From Podarcis melisellensis (Eukaryota), in the NCBI GenBank assembly GCA_964234715.1, contig OZ174284.1: a DNA stretch of 64,000 bases; one strand, written 5' to 3'. Within the stretch, counting starts at the first letter, position 1. Every line of letters starts with the position of its first letter. Shown here in pieces: positions 20,243 through 63,141 of this stretch. Under the pieces are notes generated by a model that worked only from the letters and a program-made list of their open reading frames with translations, had not been told where the DNA came from and did no database searches. Both the position numbers and the translations under genes were made by a program.

Positions 20243-20569
20243 GCAGCTGACCATGACATCTTAACATGGTCCTGTGTTAACTGATGCTTTGCATGTGGCC
20301 TGCAGGGAGGTTCTGATACACCTCTTTTTAGAAGTTCATTATATGTGTATGTGCAAAAACACCTTTAGGATGTAATCCAATAGACACATTTTTTCAAAAG
20401 TAAGCCTCCCTGAATTGACTGAGGCTTATTTCCAAGTAAACGTGTATTGGATCAAGTTGTAGCTGTGGCTTATTCTCCCCGATACTTTGTGCAAAAGGAC
20501 AAATTCCATATAAACCGAGATCAAAAATAAGCTTTGGAAGCAGGGAGCTTTCTAATGAGCAACAACAAA

Positions 20570-21054
20570 GCACCACAGTTCAAGAAGGACACTGACAAAC
20601 TGGAACGTGTCCAGAGGAGGGCAACCAAAATGGTCAAAGGCCTGGAAACGATGCCTTATGAGGAACGGCTAAAGGAGCTGGGCATGTTTAGCCTGGAGAA
20701 GAGGTTAAGGGGTGATATGATAGCCATGTTCAAATATATAAAAGGATGTCACATAGAGGAGGGAGAAAGGTTGTTTTCTGCTGCTCCAGAGAAGCGGACA
20801 CGGAGCAATGGATCCAAACTACAAGAAAGAAGATTCCACCTAAGCATTAGGAAGAACTTCCTGACAGTAAGAGCTGTTCGACAGTGGAATTTGCTGCCAA
20901 GGAGTGTGGTGGAGTCTCCTTCTTTGGAGGTCTTTAAGCAGAGGCTTGACTACCATATGTCAGGAGTGCTCTGATGGTGTTTCCTGCTTGGCAGGGGGTT
21001 GGACTCGATGGCCCTTGTGGTCTCTTCCAACTCTATGATTCTATGATTCTATGA
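20570..21054 (+). mobile_element. CR1 LINE 3' fragment
   Basis: ORF2 C-terminus ([56 protein letters not shown]) and the CR1 (ATTCTATG)n tail. Confidence 0.95.
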
Positions 21055-40568: not shown

Positions 40569-43500
40569 CCTTAACAGGAAGGCTACTGGGAGCAGTGGTA
40601 TACCACTGGCCATGAGCATTCCCATTTATAAAAGTTAGTGCCATAAATAGAGGCTGATCTATTTGAGGCTTAGAAACAGCCGTTTTCCTGCTTGATCACC
40701 TTCAGCAAGGTAGGAATTACCTCCAGGTGATCAAGCAGAGAAGCATTTGCAAACGTGAAAATGTGTTGGTTATTTTAACCTTGTTTGCTGAGGTCATGAA
40801 TGTTCTACAAGTGACTTATGAAGTAAGTGGGAATGAGCAGGGTAGCAGCTTTTGCAGGCTTATCTGGAAGGCAGTTCCAATTGGTTGTACATAAGGTGCT
40901 AATTCACTAAAAAGAACCACCCTCAGTTAATTAGGCAGCACTTCGTTATTTTTAAAAAAGTTATTTTAAATATACTGTATATTTACTCCTACGCAGTAAG
41001 GCATATCTCTACTTAGATAATTCCTGCTATGGCATAAATGTACATCATCAAAAAATGGAGGGTTTTTGTTTTCTTTTCAGAACTATTTTTGGTCATAAGT
41101 GGACTTGTGCAGATCTAATTCACTATTAAACCAGTGCTTCCCAACCAGGAGCCATGTGGCCCCCTGTGGGGCCCCAGGATATTCCAAGGGGGGCACAGGT
41201 GAAAATCGCATAAATGGGGGGCCACAGCACAAGGCTAGGTGGCCACAGAGGGAAGTGAGAAGTGAAGGGGGGAAACCACATTTTTAAAATAAAAAAATCC
41301 TGATTGGCTGTCTATTTGCTTGGCCAATCACAAGCGGGTAAGGGGATAGCCAACCAGGGCCTAATGCTCCTTTTTGCCATGTGCATTTCTTGGATCGGTG
41401 CCTTTAGATGTTCCCAATGGGCGCTGGGCCCGTTGGCAATGTCAGCCCAGCTCTGCAAGGCGCAGGATGAAATCCACCACAGTGCCTAGCCGAGCGGGGT
41501 CGTCTGGTGCAGCTGACTTGCATCTAGTAAATAACTAGGTGCCTACTCAGAAAAAAGCTGCACTGAGTTCAGCGGGCCTTGTTGTTGTTGTTGTTTAGTC
41601 GTTTAGTCATGTCCGACTCTTCGTGACCCCATGGACCAGAGCACGCCAGGCACTCCTGTCTTCCACTGCCTCCCGCAGTTTGGTCAGACTCATGTTTGTA
41701 TCTTCAAGAACACTGTCCAACCATCTCGTCCTCTGTCGTCCCCTTCTCCTTGTGGCCTCAATCTTTCCCAACATCAGGGTCTTTTCCAGGGAGTCTTCTC
41801 TTCTCATGAGGTGGCCAAAGTATTGGAGCCTCAGCTTCACGATCTGTCCTTCCAGTGAGCACTCAGGGCTAATTTCCTTAAGAATGGATGCGTTTGATCT
41901 TCTTGCAGTCCATGGGACTCTCAAGAGTCTCCTCCAGCACCTTAATTCAAAAGCATCAATTATTCGGCGATCAGCCTTCTTTATGGTCCAGCTCTCACTT
42001 CCACACATCACTACTGGGAAAACCATGGCTTTAACTATACGGACCTTTGTTGGCAAGGTGATGTCTCTGCTTTTTAAGATGCTGTCTAGGTTTGCCATTG
42101 CCTTTCTCCCAAGGAGCAGGCGTCTTTTAATTTCGTGACTGCTGTCACCATCTGCAGTGATCATGGAGCCCAAGAAAGTAAAATCTCTCACTGCCTCCAT
42201 TTCTTCCCCTTCTATTTGCCAGGAGGTGATGGGCCCATATCCAGTTCTAACTGTAGCTTCTTGTCCCACATAGAGATTTCTCAGGAGACAGATGAGGTGA
42301 TCAGGCACTCCCATTTCTTTAAGAACTTGCCAGCGGGCCTTACTCCCAGGTAAAGGTGTGTGGGACTATAGTGTTTTATCTAGGCAGCCAGGGCTCCTCC
42401 AGATGACAATATCTTTTTGCACCAGGTCAGTGAGAATCATCTGCTTTTCAAAATTCTCCCATATATACAGAACTCCTCATGTGCCTTTTGGACTGTATCT
42501 GTAGGTTTCACCCTCTGTGTCAAATAACTGAGGCCAAATAAGTGTTGTTTACTTTTTATAATACATGGAAGATGGATCTCCCTCGGGAGGCTGTGGACTC
42601 TCCTTCCTTGGAGGTTTCTAAGCAGAGGCTGGATGACCGTCTATCATGGATGCTTTAGCTGAGTTTCCTACCTTAGAGTCCCTGCCAGCTCTACGAGCTA
42701 TGTTTTTCTGCTTCAACAATATTTCATTATGTTCCTTTTTTATGTACTGTACCGGTAATTGTATTTTGTATAAATTATAAAAATTATAAATAAAACAAGT
42801 TCTATTTACAAATAAAACATTTAAATAGCTACCTTATTTACCTGATAGGCATAGTCAATATTTGGGGGGGGGGGGCAGAACCATTGATTTGTATTGATTT
42901 TTACTTATTGGGGGAGCAGCTGCCCCCTATATTCCCCCTGGCTACACTTGGGGGGGAGCACAGGAAGGAAACAAGGTCAGAAGGGGTACATAGTCAGGAA
43001 AAGGTTGAGAAACACTGGATTAAACTAAAAGCTATACAGTTAATTAAAGGTATCTTTCACGCCCAAATATAATCTCACCTAGCATCCAGGATGCGCAGGT
43101 GTAACAGAAGACAGGTTTCCATTCTTCTAAAAACCACTTAGGATATTGAGCCCTACTTTCTGTGGCATCTTATCACTCCAACAGTGTTAGTACCATCAGC
43201 ATGGTAATATGTCAGGGCCTGATCATTTAAAGATGCAGCCTGAAACATATTTATACTGGGAAGTTAAGTCCCATTGAATTAAATAGGAATTCCAAACACA
43301 GTTCGAATTGGACTGCTGCCACCAATGACACCTCACAGAAGAGTGGGGTTATTTTTGTATTCCTGATCATGGGCTTCTAAAAGCTGCACTGCATCTGACA
43401 GGTGTAGCATTAGGGTTGCCAAATGACCATGAAAATCAATTTGGTCTGCTCCTGTGCAGCTTGAGGTGCAGAATAAATCCCAGCATTTGCATGTTTTCAC

Positions 43501-46500
43501 ACGATGGAGAGAAAACGCTATCACTTTTTAAATATCTGCACACCAAGCTACTGCTAAAGGCACAGCTGCAGTGGCTGGTTGAGAAACTGGCAACTCTGCA
43601 GAGCAGCTGTGAAGTCACTATTAGCTCAAAATGCCTTTAATTCAGTGTGCAGTCTTTTCTTGCAGACCTTTGCTCAATTACTTAGTCCTAAGTCTCACTG
43701 AGCCCGGTGGTGCTTAATTCCAAGTAAGCATACGTAGGGCTGGTCTGTTACTGTTATTTTCTGTCCCGCAATCTTTGCCCCCCAGATTCTTGTGGAGATT
43801 TGAGCTCTACAATGGCATTCTAGAAAAGTGCCAGGAATTTCAGAAACTCTTTCCTGTCTTCTTTTAGTCACTACCGTTCCCAAGTGGAGATTTCTTAACT
43901 GTGGATAGAATGGGCCTACAAATCTCCCAACTTCTGCATCCATATGAGTTTCCGTATAAACAAACAAGGTTTGAAACATCAGAAATCTGCAAATCGGATG
44001 CGCCTGCACATCCAACCATTGAGGTATCTCATTATTTTCCTTGAGGACTAGGGTTAGGGCCACACTGGGAATCTGTATGGGTTGGCTTGTGTTGTTTGTC
44101 ATGAAGCTCATCTCGAAGGTGGAATGCTGCAGGTACAACCACAACTGATCAATATATTGTACCTACACGGCAATGTACTGTTCCAGAAGCCCCAATAGTG
44201 AACACTCCCATGCAGTTCATGAAGTACATCTGGAGGTTCTGGGACTTGGAAAAACTGAACTTAGTTCTTACCTTCCTATTTCTGAGCCATTAACACAGCC
44301 CTCCAGAAGTTTTGGACTACAACTCCCATCAGCCCTAGCCAGCAAGACGGTGTTTACCTGACAGGCACCAAGTTGGAGACGGCTCCATTGGCAGGCATTG
44401 CCACTGCATTTTCAGCCTTGCCATTAATGCCATGAGGATTAGAATATGGCTTTTAAAAAACAAGCACCTTAAAGTTCTAAAATGTTGCCGCAGTAATTCG
44501 GGGGGGAGGGGGGCAAAAATAATTAAGTTAAGAGTCTGAAAGTTTTGGAGACAGCATGGAGGGTACCAATTCTATTCTGGCCACCACTGCAATATACTTG
44601 AGACAAAAAAGGGAAAAATAGGTTAATTCTGTGCCTCATCTGTTAAACACTTCAGATTTGATGGAGAAAAGGGGGGATTTTTTTACCATGCAAAGTTAAT
44701 GTACCAAGAACATCTCTAATGATATGACGGGGTTCAAACATGTACAGCTATACATTGCCTAGAAGCAAGTCCCACTGAACTTGGTGGAACTTACTCCCAA
44801 GTAAGTGTGCTTAAGCTTGCATTGCAAGTGAATTTGTAACCTACAGTACATGAGTGAAAAACAAGTGAGAGGCACAAAGACTGAACTTTTACCATATGGG
44901 AGAGAAGAACATTCAAATGCGGAAGGAATGAGGCTCTAAGTTTCTCCATCTCTTGACTTGCTCAGCTAAGCCAGTACTCCAATTCCTGAGATTTTAAGTC
45001 CTATGCACATTGAAGTAAGCCCCTTTAATTCAATGGGACCTACTCCTAGGCAAACATGCACAGGAATGGTCTTTAAGAGTTTCCACTATTCTGCAACTCA
45101 CGTGTTTTTACAAAGCAAAGTAACACATTATCACAAGAAATAGAAGGGGATCAAAGTCACTTCCAAGGTCAAGGTGCAGTAGGCAGTTGGCGGCTTTGGG
45201 GAAACAGGAGAACATCCAAGAAAAATTTGGATGCTGGGTTTCTTTCTGCAGCTGGGAAGTCATCTGATTTCGTGAAGAGAGCCAAAGAGGTGATATTCTG
45301 AAGCAGAAAGAAGCAGACTGCAGAAACCCTCTCTCTTCTCCTGTACTTGGAAAGCCCTGCAGTAACAGAATGAAGTCACAGCTTTAAAGGGGAGAACATT
45401 CTGTCCCAGATTATCAAGGACAGAAGTGTCCCATCTAACGTCATGTCAATCATAATTGGGCCAGCGCTGTCACCTGTGCTCTTTGCTGCTTTGCCTCATT
45501 CAAGTGTTTGCGCAACAGCAAAAAAGGTTCTTCCACCACATCATGTTGAATTTCACCAGCAGATGTGAAAGCCAGGAGATTATTGCTAGAATGTCTTCCG
45601 CCCTCTGGTTCGAACACTAGCATACAGCACTGCAAAATGAGCCCAGGCAGACACACCAGCCAACCATATTAATCCCTTCTTCAGGGCACTGCTAGCAATT
45701 CTGCAGAGCTCCTTCCTCCTCCTCTCATCTCCAAACATTTTCCCCAAGTCACATGCAGTCAGGCAGCACAGGAAGGGAAGGGGCACCAGCAGTCGACAGA
45801 AAAACAGGTGGCAAGCACACTGGTTGTGCTTGGGGAGGCTGCTAACTCTCTTTTTGCCCAAAAGCAACAACTATTTGGAATATGGGGAGGGGGAGAACCT
45901 TGAGAAAAGTGGGATATAAATGTCAAAGATAAATGCTGTGCTTGCAAAAGGTAGACAAATAGTGGGTGAGATGAACAAAACACTTCAAGGCAACTTCCTG
46001 GGCTAACTTTATTGCAGGGGTCAGCAACCTAAGGCCCATGGGCCGGAAGTGGCCTGCGGAGGTTGTTTAACTGGCCCATGAACTGCCCCCAAACTGAGTA
46101 GCCCACTCGCACGCTGCACTAAACCGGCACAGTGCAGTGTGGGGATCCACTTCCACGGCGCCTAAAATCACGTCTGTGCAAGCGCAAATGCTGAAAATCA
46201 CAGGTGCAGAATCCAGCCCACAGAGGGGTCTCCGCGGGACCAATCCGGCCCAGGCAAGATAAACCTTGCTGACCCCTCTCTTAATGGCTGCAATAGGAGA
46301 GGCTAAACTCTTCCTAGAAGACTCTTGAGAGTCCCATGGACTGCAAGAAGATCAAACGCATCCATTCTTAAGGAAATTAGCCCTGGGTGCTCACTGGAAG
46401 GACAGATCCTGAAGCTGAGGCTCCAATACTTTGGCCACCTCATGAGAAGAGAAGACTCCCTGGAAAAGACTCTGATGTTGGGAAAGATGGAGGGCACAAG

Positions 46501-48276
46501 GAGAAGGGGACGACAGAGGACGAGATGGTTGGATAGTGTTCTTGAAGCGACAAACATGAGTCTGACCAAGCTGCAGGAGGCAGTGGAAGATAGGAGTGCC
46601 TGGCGTGCTCTGGTCCATGGGGTCACGAAGAGTAGGACACGACTAAACGACTGAACAACAACAAACTCTTCCTACACCATCATCCCTCACAACAAGAGAT
46701 GCCCTGTCCCTATCCAACATTTACTCTCCCCCTCTCTCTTTTTCTTGGCCTACTGGGGGAGGGTGAGAAGAAGGCATCTCACCTCCAAGATCTGCTTTAC
46801 CTGGCTGTGTCCTCCTTCCCTCTCTCCCTACAGACTCCCACAAGAGACAAATCTCTCTCCCTCCAGCTTATTGTTTGCAGCCTGCTCCCTTAATCCCAGT
46901 GACCTTCTTGCAAATGCTCCAGGCACACACGGGCGGCCATGGCGAAAGTGTCACAAGATAAGTGACCTCCCCCCACCCCGAGGGAGCCGCGCAGTCGAGA
47001 GAGCAGCTTTCCTTCCCTCCTCTTGCTGACGGATCCCATCAACTCGCTTCCTCCATCACACATGAACGGCGTTACATAAAATTTGCTACACGGTAAAATT
47101 GAAAGTGAAGGAGGATTTGCAAGAGGACACCACGCATTTGCCCCCTTCTCTCCTTCCGCGGCCCCCATCCTCTGTAAATGAAATAAGCAGGAACCAACTG
47201 AAATAAATTAAGGGAAGGGTTAGGAAAAGGGCAGCTGAAATTCAGAATCACTTTTGCAGTTCTCTCGTCCAACTGCCTCACCATTAACAGCTCATCGCGC
47301 AGGTTATGGGAAACTCTCCCATTTTCTGCATGTTTTCATGAACATTTAATAATAGCAGCGTCAGGCTTACGAGGCTGGAGGACCGGCTTAACCATTTCCA
47401 TCTTTCAAAGGAAGCCGGCAGTAGTTTTGGAAAGGGGAAGAAACAAGAGAGAGAGGGAGTCTCCAATACAGAAGGCGGCTGGGAGGGCATGTTTCCGAGT
47501 TTTCCAAACGCTTTACCCGGAGAGATCTGGGCAATGAAGAGAGGCGGGGGAAGGGCGCTCACAATGCCATTTTGCACCTTGCTTGCCGGGCTAGCTGTGT
47601 GCTCCACAGTCTGCACAACACAAACACACACAGAGCACCAGTTTGCAAACACTGCCGCTCCGCCGCCGCACAAGAGACGGAAAACGGAGATGGAAGAAGC
47701 AAGCCGAGCTGGGGGCTCCATGACAGCCAAGACACGGCCTCGCTCCCATCTTAGAGGTCACTTTGGGCAGGCGGCGTTGCAGGATCCCCCCCCCAGTTGC
47801 CCGCTTGGCCGGCACCCCCACCCCGCGATCTCCTTCGCCCCACGGGGGCAGGGGAAGCCGAGAAGTGGGTCCCCCAAATCCAACCACCCGGCGCTGGGCT
47901 TTCCTAATCTTCCTTTCCACGATCTCGCGTGCGCGCGCGCGCTGGGAAGGACATTCCTCCTCCTCCTTAAAGCCCCGCTGAGTGTCATCTAAAGCTTGCC
48001 CTGGGTGCTCAGTCAGCAGGATAGGGATCAACCCCACAGCCAAGCCAAGCGCGCCCAGGGCTCTCTGCAGATCTCTCTTTCAGACGTGCCGATTGCTTTG
48101 CACGTGTTTTTGTTATTTCCCACGCCAGTGGCCTTCCCTCCCCCGCGCGGCCAGGGAGGCGTCCTCCGAGTCCTTACCCAAGAAACCATCCGGAGGATCG
48201 TGTGAGGTTGCCGGATGAAGGTCTGAGGGTCAAAGGCGCCCCCGGCTTTGCCAGCTCCGTACGCGCCCTGTTCCAT
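22487..48276 (-). CDS. SYNGR1: Synaptogyrin-1 (MARVEL-domain synaptic vesicle protein), isoform 1a-like; exons 48178-48276, 30503-30740, 24911-25056, 22487-22705 (702 nt, 233 aa)
   Basis: MEQGAYGAGKAGGAFDPQTFIRQPHTILRMVSW / LFSIVVFGGIVNEGY...YFPQISSVKDRKKAVLSDIGVS / LWAFLWFVSFCFLADQW...AARAAITFSLFSFFTW / ...AFQRYQLGADSALFSQDY...GYQAQDY. GT-AG introns, consistent phases, position between TAB1 and RPL3 as in mammals. Confidence 0.97.
23505..23713. mobile_element. Palindromic MITE (same group as 14605-14804)
   Basis: gtcacatctgcaccacaggtttaaagcac / gtgctttacatgcctggtgtggatgtgac inverted ends; internal gggaactgtagt / actacaactccc. Confidence 0.65.
24168..24266 (-). CDS. SYNGR1: SYNGR1 alternative terminal exon (isoform 1b-like), GILTFLAFRRLGEITFQEEYNTLFPSSPPVLP*; gives a 193-aa isoform
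   Basis: Polypyrimidine tract plus CAG acceptor (ctctccctacag|GGC), phase 0 matching exon 3. FQEEYNTLFP resembles the mammalian synaptogyrin-1b C-terminus as I recall it (FQEEYSTLFP). AATAAA at 24057-24062 on the minus strand. Confidence 0.88.
   Translation of the reverse strand, partial: GILTFLAFRRLGEITFQEEYNTLFPSSPPVLP
25675..26001. mobile_element. Non-autonomous hAT element with internal tandem duplication
   Basis: Termini cagaggtcagcaa / ttgcctacccatg, TSD ctttggag/ctctggag, duplicated ccccacaaataacc..agag..ttttaaata..cacattctactcatg unit. Confidence 0.75.
30877..31012. mobile_element. Palindromic hAT (Charlie-like) MITE, 136 bp
   Basis: TIR caggcataggcaaact / agtttccctgtgcctg, near-perfect internal palindrome, perfect 8-bp TSD ctctacac. 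Confidence 0.92.
32411..32630. mobile_element. Truncated Tigger-like MITE (one TIR)
   Basis: Ends cgaggtaccactg|ta with repeated tttgtaacctga subterminal units; the other TIR is not found. Confidence 0.7.
33896..34136. mobile_element. Tc1/mariner (Tigger-like) MITE
   Basis: TIR cagtcgtaccttgg / ccaaggtacgactg flanked by TA on both sides. Confidence 0.9.
35925..36065 (+). mobile_element. tRNA-derived squamate SINE (degraded)
   Basis: A-box-like agctcagtggcagaaca and B-box-like gtcccaggatcacctcc, followed by aagacccctgcctgagcctccggagagctactgcc. Confidence 0.6.
36944..37090. mobile_element. Small hAT-type MITE containing TTAGGG repeats
   Basis: TIR cggtggcgtag / ctacaccactg; 8-bp TSD tttggggt/tttggcgt. 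Confidence 0.75.
37590..37730 (-). mobile_element. tRNA-derived SINE (Squam3/MIR-like, degraded)
   Basis: Reverse complement begins gagccactgtggtgcaatggttagagt with a B-box-like segment; related fragments near 49040-49160 and 52440-52600. Confidence 0.5.
38366..38455 (+). mobile_element. LINE (L2-like) 3' end with (TAT)n tail
   Basis: aagctgcccagagtggctgg..cccagccagatgggcggagtataaataataaa(tta)n resembles a common lizard LINE terminus. Confidence 0.5.
40520..40566. repeat. (GT)n microsatellite
   Basis: Perfect dinucleotide run; others at about 3525-3556, 13174-13196, 13558-13610 and 16590-16627. Confidence 0.95.
41581..42330 (-). mobile_element. BovB (RTE clade) LINE, 5'-truncated and internally deleted
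   Basis: ORF 41607..42314 is BovB-like (GVPDHLICLLRNLY, DAFELRCWRRLLRVPWTARRSN, WRALVHGVTKSRT). (CAA)n tail; 11-bp TSD cagcgggcctt at 41570-41580 and 42331-42341. Confidence 0.95.
42575..42700 (+). mobile_element. Degraded CR1 3' fragment
   Basis: gtggactctccttccttggaggtttctaagcagaggctggat parallels the CR1 copy at about 20910-20950. Confidence 0.65.
46015..46278. mobile_element. Non-autonomous hAT element
   Basis: TIR caggggtcagcaa / ttgctgacccct, with ggcccatgggccgg and ccggccc subterminal motifs. Confidence 0.75.
46317..46662 (+). mobile_element. BovB LINE 3' fragment
   Basis: RVPWTARRSNASILKEISPGCSLEGQILKLRLQYFGHLMRR...VTKSRTRLND; (CAA)n tail; 12-bp TSD aaactcttccta at 46305-46316 and 46663-46674. 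Confidence 0.95.
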
Positions 48277-48800
48277 CCTGGGAGCGACCCCGGGGCAAGA
48301 CCCGCCGCTCTGCTGGTCGCTCTGTCGGCAGCGAAAAGTTTATTGCACTGGCGGGCCGGGGGTGCTTCGGAGAAGGGGAAGCCAGCCAGCCCGCGCTGCC
48401 CGGCAAGGAGGGCGCGCCGTGCAGGGGCAGCCTTAGCGGAGGCAGTGCCGCAAGGGTGGTGTGCGAGGCAAGGGAAAGGCTAGCTGGGCATGGCAGCCCG
48501 CGCTCCGGCTCGCCTCTCGCTCACCGCCCCGCCTGCTTGCCTGCCTGGCTGGCTGGCGATGGAGGAGAGAGCAACACGCTCGAAGCCAGGGCACCAGTGG
48601 CAGGCTTGGGCTCAGCGGCAAGCCAGGCGCGCTCCCGTTTTCGCGGCAGTCATGGGGCTGGCGCGAGCTTCGGAGGAAGAGAGCGCGCGCGCGCGCGCCT
48701 CCCTGCCCGCGCAGCCCCGGCAACATGGGGGGCGGGGCGAAGGGAGTGGGGAGGGGGTGGGCCTCTGCAGGCCTCTGGGGGCTTCTGCACCTCAGAGACT
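47600..48800 (-). promoter_or_regulatory. SYNGR1 CpG island / promoter
   Basis: Very high GC and CpG density spanning exon 1, GC boxes (ggggcgggg) and a (GC)8 run at 48683-48698. Confidence 0.8.
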
Positions 48801-51630: not shown

Positions 51631-53698
51631 TGCTAAGAGTAGAATGATTGAATTAAAAGTTTGGCTAGAAAAGTGGTTTCAAAGTGGTCAATCTGCACAG
51701 GCTTAAGAGAGCACACCTTGCATTCAACATTACCTTGCATTCGTGAAGAGTTTAATAATTCATTACTCATCCTCTTGTTCTCAATTTAATGCCTGTTCAG
51801 GTTGCAGTTCTCATCTCCTTAGCCAGCATTATACATAGCACCTTATCCCCCCAAAAAATCTGGTTTAAATTAGTCAACACAATTACCTCTAACAACAGAC
51901 AGCGATATTGCTGATTTTTATCACATCTGTTTTTGTTCACTACCAAACAGGATGAGGAAGATAATGTTACACTGTTGTGTATATTTTATGTGTAAAGATG
52001 ATAACCCTGTTGTCTTGACTCCTGCAGCCCTGTTCCTCTCCATGCTTTTTTTCATTTCCTCTTTTGCTCTCTCCACCTCCAGCTGATAATATTTACAGAA
52101 GCACATGGCAGTAACGTGTCTAGGATGGAGTCAGATTTGGCATCACATTGTGCAAAGCCTCTTACAGAATGTTAGATCGTACTCAGGAGAGAAAAATGAA
52201 ATATTTATAATAATGAAGTCATACTGTCAGTGCCTGAAAAACTTGGATAGGGATTCGGGTTTTGCCATCCCCACCTGAACCCACTCCAACTCCCCCAGAG
52301 AACTGGACCAAATTATACCAGAACTTATTTTCCCTCTCCCTCTCAAACACCTAGCTAAGCTACCCCAACTCTTCTCTCTTCAGGTAAGCCATGACTATTT
52401 GTGGAGGAAGCACCCACTGTGGTCATCTAACATTCAATAGAGGCAGTGCGGTGTAAATATGAAGATTGTTGGGCCCAATTTAAAACCCCACTCATCTATG
52501 AGTGGGTGACCTTGAGCCAGTCACTCTAACCTCCATCATTAGGATTCTTGTGAAGATAAAGAGGGATGGGGGACACCATGTATGTCAGTCACCCTGAGCT
52601 CCTTGAAGGAAGCGCAGCATAGAAATATAGTAATATTCTCCCTAGCTGCATACAAATGAATAGGAAATATTACTGCTTGGTCACAGCATTTGTGAAAACT
52701 TTATTCAGCAGCCTCATTTAGCATGGGAAAGGGGCTTCTGGAGGGTCAATATTGTCAAACCATTGGGAGTCAGAAACCCTTGACGATCTACTAGTGATTA
52801 ACCTTCTGCCCTCCTCTTAAGCCCAGCAAAGAGTGTTTTGGAGTGGTTTCAAACATTACAGACCCTGAGACATCTGGGTGATTCAGACTATTTCTTTATT
52901 TAACTCCACTTATGAGTCACTTCCCATAAAATATATTGAAGTGATTTCAGTCCTAGGCTGAATTCCTGGCATTTCTGGGTGTTTGTTTAAGAAAGCAAAA
53001 AATTGGGTAGCAGGGTGATGTGAAAAACCTTTGTCCCAGACCCTGGAGAATCACTTCTGGGCAGAGTAAACAATACCAGACCAGATCATGGACAAAAAGT
53101 CTGATATAATGAAAGGTAGTCTTGCATATTTTTGTGTATTTTGACAGTGCAATCCTCTGACTCAGATTTACTCCCAAGCTTAAGACTGTCATCTGAGTTC
53201 TCCCTGCTTTCAATAACGTTTGTGCTGTCAAAATAATTGTTGCTTCAGAATATGCAACTTCTCGAAAGAGTACTACCTTCTTATGCCTATCTAATTTCCC
53301 AGACTGCATTTCACATTTCCAAGACCAGAAAATGTGTGCAAATTGCCATAACGATTCACCATTAAGCATTTAGCCACAGTTTTATTACCACCATTATCAT
53401 AATTTGTCATCAGAGTCAGGATATGAACTACAACTCTCAAGAGGCTTGACTTTCAGAAGCACATTTTCTTCTTGGGATTCCTAGGCACTTACTAGTTCAC
53501 ATTTCCTTATTTGGTACAGAGCTGCATGAGCAACATAAATATGGAATTGAAGTTTATATGCCCCTGTATCCCAAAATTAGCTTTGGATTATTGCATATCA
53601 TCACAGTGACCAGGATAAAATCCGAGTGCAGTTGCTACAGAAAGGACATTTCACCATTTAAAACAACTGTACATAAAAGAGGTTGTCTAATTATCCAT

Positions 53699-54712
53699 TT
53701 ATATGACGGCCTTAACAACACTGTAGAACACGGAAAGATAGATTGCAATGAAGAGCACACAGGCTACCTTCACCTGCTTCAAAGTTGCACTTGTTTCTTG
53801 CATAGCAAAAGCTTTCCTCATTCTGATGTTGGTCTGGAATCTCACGTGCAGAGGAATATTGGTACCATCTAAACCATACTTGCCTGGCCCACTGGTTATG
53901 TGTTCAGTGGCCACAACAAACTTTAGTGCCGCAAAAGTCTGTGGTATGTCCTTTAAGATGGAAAATGAAGGGCCCCCGAAACGTGAGCACAAAGACATGC
54001 AGGGATGTGGGAGTGTACTGGTGATGTGGTCTAAGATCTTCGCTTTGCAGGCTGAACTCAATGTGGGTCTGACCAAGTTAAAAAGCAGGGTCAGTGCACA
54101 TTTTGTTACTTTTGCTGTCAGCTGTGAAGCTTCCTGAACTCCATCAAGCAATCCCAGGAAGAGCGAGAAAATAATTTGCTTCATGACTGGTCGCAACACT
54201 GTCTGGTAGGTTTCATAGTTTTCTTGGAGGAAGGGGCTTATGGAGTGGTGCAGCCTTGTAGATGAAATAGCTGGTAGACCTCTTTGTTTCAGGAACCCTA
54301 GCAACTCCAGAGCCCATTTGGCAGCACACCATTGCAAGACACCAGCCAAATAAAAACACAAGTACCTTGCAGCTGCCCGAGAATGCCATAGGATTTTAAG
54401 TGCTGGGACTAGCACTTCCTTCCAGAGCTTCCTGATGAGAATTAAATGCATGGCACGTAACATCTTTAGGCTGCAGTGCCACAAGATGAAGATCCCAGTC
54501 GCTTGCACAGTGACCCAACAGAAGACTAGCTTGACTATGGTGGCCAAGGGGCGCAATAGCGGCATGTAGACTTTCACCAATAGGTAATGCATAAAGAAGT
54601 AGAGTAGCATGAGCTGGGTTTGGGGCAGCAGCCTCAAAGTCAGCTGTGTCATGTACATCACAGTTTGTTTCCCAATTGGCTGGTAAATGGCAAGCCTCTT
54701 CTCACCTGCCAT
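53699..54712 (-). CDS. Uncharacterised hydrophobic (probable multi-pass membrane) protein, 337-aa ORF; possibly the last exon of a 3-exon 441-aa gene (55076-55266, 54706-54925, 53699-54613)
   Basis: Longest ORF in the window and not recognisably repeat-derived. Strong Kozak context (acaaaATGG), several hydrophobic segments including a C-terminal one, AATAAA about 310 nt after the stop (53381-53386), head-to-head with the RPL3 promoter. No homologue recognised. Confidence 0.6.
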   Translation of the reverse strand: MAGEKRLAIYQPIGKQTVMYMTQLTLRLLPQTQLMLLYFFMHYLLVKVYMPLLRPLATIVKLVFCWVTVQATGIFILWHCSLKMLRAMHLILIRKLWKEVLVPALKILWHSRAAARYLCFYLAGVLQWCAAKWALELLGFLKQRGLPAISSTRLHHSISPFLQENYETYQTVLRPVMKQIIFSLFLGLLDGVQEASQLTAKVTKCALTLLFNLVRPTLSSACKAKILDHITSTLPHPCMSLCSRFGGPSFSILKDIPQTFAALKFVVATEHITSGPGKYGLDGTNIPLHVRFQTNIRMRKAFAMQETSATLKQVKVACVLFIAIYLSVFYSVVKAVI

Positions 54713-55619
54713 TTTGTTAATGTAGACCCCTTAGAAACAAGGCCATGCTCATCCCAGCACAAATGTCTTGCCTTGCTTTGCTTTGCCTTCTGACTTGAGC
54801 CATCTGTTTTTGGACTCCCCTTATGTAACTGGGTGATGATGACACCACAGTAGATTGCATCAGAAAGAGGGCTAAGTGTGGTTATGCTGGGGTGGGGTTG
54901 TACCTTCAGCTCCAGCCTTTCCAAACTATGAGCTTTTAAAAAAAAACCCTAATGGGTAGGATTCAGACTCCTCACTCCCAGACTACAACCCCATAGTGGG
55001 GAAAAGTTCACAGATAAGAAGCTGGAGTGTACTTGGGTGTTGGGGAAAGAGATGGGCCATACTCAGTACGATTACTGTGGGTCAGTAACAGCACAGAGCT
55101 GCCTGAGCATCAGTGACAGCAGTGCAGGGAAGCAAAGAGATTTTCTGTAAGGAATACTGTAATTTTCTTCCTCAGTCTCCTCCTTCCTCTTCTTTATTAT
55201 ACTTAAACCTCTTCTGACTTGGAAGAGGGGCTGCTGAAGAGATCTATGGAACCCAAAAGCTTGCATTTTCAGCCATTACCAAACTTTAACAGACGCCTCC
55301 AAACTAATACCATCTTCTCTGCTTTGTACACCCTAGTGCTGTTGGAGGGGGGGATTATAGGTTTATGCTGGACTCCCGCGTCGTTGATAATCCTGTCCTT
55401 TGATAGACAAATTTAAGCCCCAATTTCCCGGCCTCCAGTATTATGACTAGATAGAGACATCCCTCCCCCACTGAAAGGATGGAATTTGCTTCCTCGTACG
55501 CATGCACGAGTTTAATGAGGGACCTCCCGATAAAGCAGTCCTTCATGCGAAATGGCATCATCTGAGGAATTCATAACCCTCCCGGCACCCGTAGCCTTTA
55601 CTTTTTTTTAAAAAGTTAT

Positions 55620-55797: not shown

Positions 55798-55800
<3 letters not shown>
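55620..55800. promoter_or_regulatory. RPL3 promoter (probably bidirectional) with 5' TOP pyrimidine tract
   Basis: CpG-rich. NRF1-like CGCATGCGCA (55688-55697) and TGCGCATGCC (55719-55728), CTCGCGATA (55636-55644), E-box CACGTG (55667-55672), TATA-like GATAAATAG (55742-55750), and pyrimidine tract cctttccacttcccttct (55761-55778) just upstream of the ATG that ends exon 1. Confidence 0.8.

Positions 55801-63141
<7,341 letters not shown>

Follow-up and report, generated by a model that had tools for sequence, protein, structure and literature searches.

An open reading frame of the lizard Podarcis melisellensis, situated between RPL3 and SYNGR1, represents an unnamed coding gene which, as shown by comparison of sequences, was carried by the ancestor that reptiles and mammals share and has been vertically inherited in the RPL3-SYNGR1 interval. 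The loci compared indicate that the same genomic spot has been held for more than 300 million years in lizards, snakes, a turtle and several mammals. There is little doubt that this is a real protein-coding gene, and its product is very probably a membrane protein anchored at the C-terminus, as judged from the amino acid sequences. The best explanation as a whole, with a probability of about 0.55, is a membrane scaffold of the ER type whose expression is biased to germ cells.

Catalogues of vertebrate genes are generally regarded as close to complete. Despite this, a conserved amniote family was found here for which there is no name and for which no profile, structure or paper was found. The family was previously predicted in databases only as hypothetical or LOC proteins, and is unnamed and unstudied. 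In kind it belongs to the uncharacterised C-terminally anchored membrane proteins, and it is not a new kind of system. Features of the gene and its surroundings are collected in Table 1.

Table 1. Positions of the gene, its parts and its neighbours in the analysed DNA, with database homologs
Feature	Position	Strand	Remarks
Single coding exon of the unnamed amniote gene	53699..54712	-	337 aa, one terminal stop
C-terminal transmembrane anchor (predicted), residues 316-333	53714..53767	-	4-residue tail with Lys first; kept in full-length orthologs
Second hydrophobic segment, residues 59-77	54482..54538	-	Possible membrane-embedded helix
First hydrophobic segment, residues 35-53	54554..54610	-	Turtle and mammal similarity begins here
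Best-conserved segment, residues about 231-294	53831..54022	-	Thr, Leu, Pro, Arg, Phe and Gly common to reptiles and mammals; poor AlphaFold model
Conserved block upstream, non-coding (promoter or 5' UTR)	54713..54930	-	CpG-poor; cross-species reading frame absent
15-nt element	54854..54868	-	12/15 columns invariant, 8 reptile sequences; TGATGxAA motif at 54862-54854
Candidate polyadenylation signal AATAAA	53381..53386	-	Position not conserved in most orthologs
RPL3, divergent neighbour	55798..63140	+	Context gene
SYNGR1 first coding exon region, downstream neighbour	about 48171..48288	-	Context gene
Database homologs, mammals			Equus LOC106836910 (XP_014705624), LOC103565678; Pteropus LOC120602800 (XP_039718953); Phyllostomus HJG60_010047; Diceros HPG69_017650
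Database homologs, reptiles			Phrynocephalus JRQ81_016246; Naja E2320_004045; Lerista lerEdw1_019633; Caretta CAM2097972

The reading frame and its conservation

The window, that is, the whole stretch of 64,000 nucleotides that was analysed, holds no longer open reading frame than this one (337 aa, against 235 aa for the runner-up), as the first-pass annotation had stated. The same annotation described the frame as unlike the local repeats, and a search of the window for further copies of it found none. It also held that a frame of this length exceeds chance. Neutral simulation agrees, since at 0.35 substitutions per site 0/1000 simulated copies stayed free of stops; the dS between the frame and those of other squamates is 0.65-0.8, above the simulated distance. 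Two claims about the ends of the gene were confirmed with caveats. The start lies in the reported Kozak context (AAA ATG G, with A at -3 and G at +4), of which the G at +4 is peculiar to this species, and the ATG with A at -3 is retained in all aligned squamates. The reported AATAAA was found 313 nt past the stop, but its place shifts among most orthologs.

When the six frames were compared across 11 DNA sequences, only this frame was open in 11/11, and a search of the same sequences for a conserved antisense or alternative frame found none. In these sequences the frame was free of scattered stops and frameshifts, apart from one late 1-nt shift in Phrynocephalus. That shift, in a run of C near the 3' end (L001:10820-11000), cuts the annotated protein to 283 aa; it is likely an assembly error, because the other frame runs on through an intact anchor. 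Pairwise dN/dS, for which values near 1 would argue against a gene, ranges from 0.22 to 0.57 with every bootstrap interval below 1. Podarcis melisellensis gives 0.37-0.52 when compared with other reptiles; pairs of snakes and pairs of skinks give 0.22-0.31, and pairs of mammals 0.50-0.57. A maximum-likelihood codon model of seven squamates (IQ-TREE, fixed tree) gave an omega of 0.56 and rejected omega = 1 (p = 4e-14). These codon comparisons show the gene to be fast-evolving under purifying selection.

Some other open reading frames of the window can be mentioned. A 138-aa frame at 52953-53369 (-), directly downstream on the same strand, has no Pfam match; in the part compared, its alignment to other species is poor, and the frame is probably a product of chance. 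Two further frames, of 235 aa at 41607-42314 (-) and 146 aa at 20534-20974 (+), are putative remnants of BovB/RTE and CR1 retroelements.

Orthologs, synteny and age of the gene

Full-length homologs with 49-57% identity were found by protein searches in Crotalus, Ophiophagus, Naja, Lerista and Phrynocephalus; geckos have homologs too, partly as shorter models, and the loggerhead turtle protein is 43% identical. With a profile search, placental homologs of about 25% identity were found as well, in rhino, horses, Phyllostomus, Pteropus, Rousettus and camel, and intact orthologs are present in rhino and Phyllostomus. In the protein tree, Podarcis melisellensis stands with the agamid and the snakes, followed by skinks and geckos, the turtle and the mammals, while one further sequence, UPI00028BE9F5, forms a long branch outside the placentals. 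Such a species-like tree is what vertical inheritance predicts, and the gene is therefore older than the split between reptiles and mammals. These homologs are the hypothetical and LOC proteins of the databases, which were predicted automatically and carry neither a name nor a function nor a Pfam assignment; all full-length members end in the anchor, and the six loci that were fetched have one coding exon beside RPL3 and/or SYNGR1. Gekko kuhli KAL8221893 carries the GenBank label UNVERIFIED_CONTAM, yet it groups with the other geckos on the tree. Three short matches come partly from ENA metagenome assemblies and may be host DNA, possibly human; they were set aside.

The start of the gene in Podarcis melisellensis is 1.1 kb from the RPL3 start codon (55798, +), and SYNGR1 exon 1 follows about 5.4 kb downstream. 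In the agamid, skink, cobra and Phyllostomus loci, the gene is one coding exon between RPL3 and SYNGR1. The rhino locus has one coding exon beside RPL3, with SYNGR1 unseen within 10 kb, and the loggerhead turtle locus has one beside SYNGR1, with RPL3 unseen within 10 kb. The start-to-start spacing to RPL3 is 1.8-2.3 kb in the other squamates and 3.4 kb in rhino. In the squamates and rhino checked, the gene lies 1-3.5 kb from the RPL3 start. It is a defined and testable target. In Lerista (L013:8963-9804, -), the stretch from RPL3 to the gene contains a further call, a spliced gene of 62 aa on the RPL3 strand; this call is absent from the other loci fetched.

The first-pass annotation had favoured a gene restricted to reptiles or squamates, which is refuted by the orthologs of turtle, rhino and Phyllostomus and the homologs of horse, fruit bat and camel. 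Its suggestion of loss in mammals is likewise not supported for mammals as a whole, given the intact orthologs of rhino and Phyllostomus. The least credible of the alternatives weighed here is a gene that arose de novo in squamates, or else a viral or transposon reading frame that was domesticated recently. The lack of any family match in Pfam, PDB and Atlas would suit it. The turtle and mammal orthologs of the RPL3-SYNGR1 interval, together with the species-like tree, rule out that the gene arose de novo in squamates. For domestication there was no evidence in Pfam, viral contigs, fold searches or the search for copies; the gene is single in the window, and neither viral sequence nor viral structure matched. 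An ancient, unrecognisable origin from a mobile element before the amniotes is possible.

No primate, rodent, bird or crocodilian proteins were named among the matches of searches that were limited by word and length, so loss in these groups is a possibility. We know of no coding gene in the human annotation at the position between RPL3 and SYNGR1. If the absence from primates, rodents and birds is real loss, the gene will provide a clean case for repeated gene loss. Tentatively, and against somewhat unfavourable odds, the family may be an ancestral amniote membrane-shaping one, needed in reptiles and laurasiatherian mammals and lost in several major lineages. If so, the lack of the gene in the usual model species would explain why it has gone unnoticed, and losing it would be the sign of a changed biology of sperm or organelles.

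The predicted membrane protein

The product of 337 aa was claimed to be poor in Asp and Glu, which holds (D+E = 12; K+R = 37; pI 9.9; GRAVY 0.51). All orthologs examined are basic (pI 9.1-11.4), with a product of 310-340 aa. The several hydrophobic segments described earlier are present, but a number of them score as amphipathic or moderate; the C-terminal segment is the consistent transmembrane candidate, and residues 59-77 are a less clear one. The predicted anchor and its short tail are placed at the extreme C-terminus in 16/16 full-length C-termini examined. The last about 18 residues have a GRAVY of 1.8-2.9 (mostly 2.1-2.9), and no other segment is strong in all of the full-length members. 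Residues 59-77 reach a Kyte-Doolittle value of about 2.0 in many orthologs and are weaker than the anchor. Net charge before the anchor is +3 to +7. The tail after it has 0-4 residues and a charge of 0 to +2, mostly +1 or +2 among orthologs, and the turtle tail is uncharged.

The reptile and mammal consensus sequences have 48 positions in common, mostly Leu, Pro, Gly, Arg and Lys, which are densest in residues 233-295 and in the anchor. Invariant columns of the alignment are Pro, Phe and Leu only, which argues against an enzyme. Two AlphaFold models of low confidence (pLDDT 46 and 54) agree in showing long helices over about 190-210 N-terminal residues, an unresolved part rich in Pro and Gly, and a C-terminal helix. 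Repeats internal to the N-terminal helices were looked for, and none was found.

Relatives outside the family were sought widely. Among 35 members scanned, no Pfam match was above the curated cut-off (best E 0.03), and neither single proteins nor alignments of 14, 19 and 35 members gave a usable match to Pfam. PHROGs, PDB sequences and ESM Atlas features gave none either. Weak matches to Stu2, DisA, RapH_N and DUF5609 were judged to be chance. A search of viral contigs found no relatives, and no likeness to Env, Gag or transposase was seen by sequence or by fold, the fold query being a low-confidence model. The Foldseek comparison proposed by the first-pass annotation was run against PDB and viral structures; with such a model as query it returned generic helical hairpins only, and so did searches of Atlas and VIA. 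In the literature, no paper on the gene or its class was found, nor any on five database identifiers.

SYNGR1, of the synaptogyrin/MARVEL type, resembles the gene in being adjacent, on the same strand and a membrane protein, and one horse model fuses both. The 337-aa protein, however, lacks a MARVEL domain and profile similarity to SYNGR1, and is not a duplicate of it; the paralog candidate was rejected at a profile probability of 0.1% (E 0.52). Tail-anchored proteins (PMC5450235) are nearer in design, with an extreme C-terminal helix, a short tail of low charge and, in squamates, no hydrophobic N-terminus. The difference is that further hydrophobic segments near residues 35-77 could be membrane-embedded as well, in which case the protein would not be single-pass, and a sequence relation to known tail-anchored members was not found.

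In the proposed mechanism, the anchor would place the protein in a membrane inside the cell. The ER is the most likely site, or else a membrane derived from it, for which the nuclear envelope, the acrosome and the lipid droplet are candidates. An ER-type membrane is preferred because the anchor is strongly hydrophobic and the charge of the tail is low. Mean tail charges are 0.21 for ER, 1.12 for mitochondria and 6.0 for peroxisome, and high hydrophobicity overrides towards the ER (PMC5450235). By these rules, a peroxisomal location would be unlikely. It is a less probable reading, though one to be taken seriously, that the product of the same gene would be anchored in the mitochondrial outer membrane, for example in the mitochondrial sheath of sperm, where its basic amphipathic helices would tether or shape mitochondria. 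A tail charge of mostly +1 or +2 is near the mitochondrial mean (PMC5450235), and the positive charge before the anchor, with a pI of about 10, is consistent with this location. The turtle tail and the anchor GRAVY, mostly of a hydrophobicity that favours the ER (PMC5450235), speak against it. Weighing these features of sequence, an ER-type location would be somewhat preferred to a mitochondrial one.

For the ER-type scaffold, the N-terminal about 190 residues would consist of long helices, amphipathic or hydrophobic, which rest on the bilayer or hairpin into it. Helices so associated with the bilayer suggest a scaffold that shapes or tethers membranes, and not an enzyme or a channel. The segment of Pro, Gly and Arg ahead of the anchor would bind a partner.

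The upstream region and expression

The 220 nt before the ATG contain 20% invariant columns among reptiles, equal to the start of the reading frame, and the value is 1% further up. Indels and stops in all frames mark this upstream block as non-coding. Its CpG o/e is 0.0-0.33, compared with 1.21 at the RPL3 promoter, and the SYNGR1 promoter is also unlike it. Every species has 3-9 ATGs within the 190 nt that precede the start, at positions that are not conserved, and they count against the best explanation. Obligatory use of the RPL3 promoter found no support, as the spacing runs from 1.1 kb to >10 kb; sharing of that promoter is possible in Podarcis melisellensis. This varying spacing makes a gene-proximal promoter more likely than dependence on that of RPL3.

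The 15-nt element within the block is conserved, relative to its surroundings, to a degree reached in 0/20000 permutations. Its TGATG(C/T)AA, similar to a C/EBP-ATF response element, is present in 7/7 reptile species at -128 to -150. The CARE consensus is TGATGxAAx (PMC5175342), and the conserved TGATG(C/T)AA core fits it as a 9-nt match. An ATF4-C/EBP role is the main regulatory alternative: the gene would encode a somatic, stress-inducible membrane protein, switched by ATF4-C/EBP via this element, with upstream ATGs that would favour translation under stress. The fit to CARE in all reptiles examined, within a block so far above its surroundings, argues for it. However, in mammals, where the upstream block is alignable, the motif is missing at the aligned place in 3/3 species; moreover, a 9-nt match is no proof of binding, and the upstream ATGs have no conserved position. 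As read from these sequences, such a role would be improbable.

It is considerably less probable still that the frame is part of a larger spliced unit, either as the last exon of a 441-aa gene of three exons or as an exon joined to SYNGR1 as an alternative 5' exon. A phase-compatible 441-aa model can be built here (exons 55266-55076, 54925-54706 and 54613-53699), in which the second exon overlaps the block conserved upstream of the frame. In Equus, the 565-aa model UPI000717BF36 joins almost the whole frame, minus its C-terminal anchor, to SYNGR1 via an extra exon; either the horse has read-through splicing, it would seem, or the model is an artefact. Checked exon by exon for coordinates and frames, the three-exon model was rejected as a conserved product: stops or shifts break the frame of the middle exon in the agamid, snakes, skinks and turtle, neither its donor nor its acceptor is conserved, and the region of the would-be first exon has 1% invariant columns. 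The start ATG with its A at -3, kept in all squamates aligned, points instead to a single coding exon, as do the stop and anchor, which the horse fusion drops and which reptiles and mammals conserve.

Logan contigs that were checked are colinear with genomic DNA. RefSeq LOC models usually have transcript support, and those of Equus and Pteropus, together with the Equus-SYNGR1 fusion model, are indirect signs of transcription. For the ER-type scaffold, the gene's own CpG-poor proximal promoter would drive transcription that is restricted to a narrow cell type, for which male germ cells are the likeliest candidate. Male germ-cell genes typically have a single coding exon, a dN/dS near 0.5, a promoter poor in CpG and patchy annotation, and the guess of male germ cells comes from these general traits. 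The class of testis-biased, fast-evolving, intron-poor membrane genes of amniotes shares with this gene one coding exon and a dN/dS of about 0.5, as well as a basic product rich in Cys and Leu, a CpG-poor promoter and patchy annotation; the likeness shown is one of traits, not of homology. By this analogy, the chances of a germ-cell bias would be slightly better than even.

The neighbouring genes contain conserved elements of their own. Within RPL3 introns, Rfam identified C/D snoRNAs in the window (U83B and a U82P-like match, + strand); the conserved intronic sites are 59887-59979 (+), 58492-58544 (+) and 57856-57956 (+), and they include a conserved block of 100 nt not called by Rfam. The rhino locus has two U83B-like copies. 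Intron 1 of SYNGR1 contains two conserved blocks, 45030-45723 and 46775-46978, with a match of up to 78% over 695 nt to skink and also matches to agamid and cobra; the shorter block is present in turtle as well. These blocks are likely enhancers or unannotated exons.
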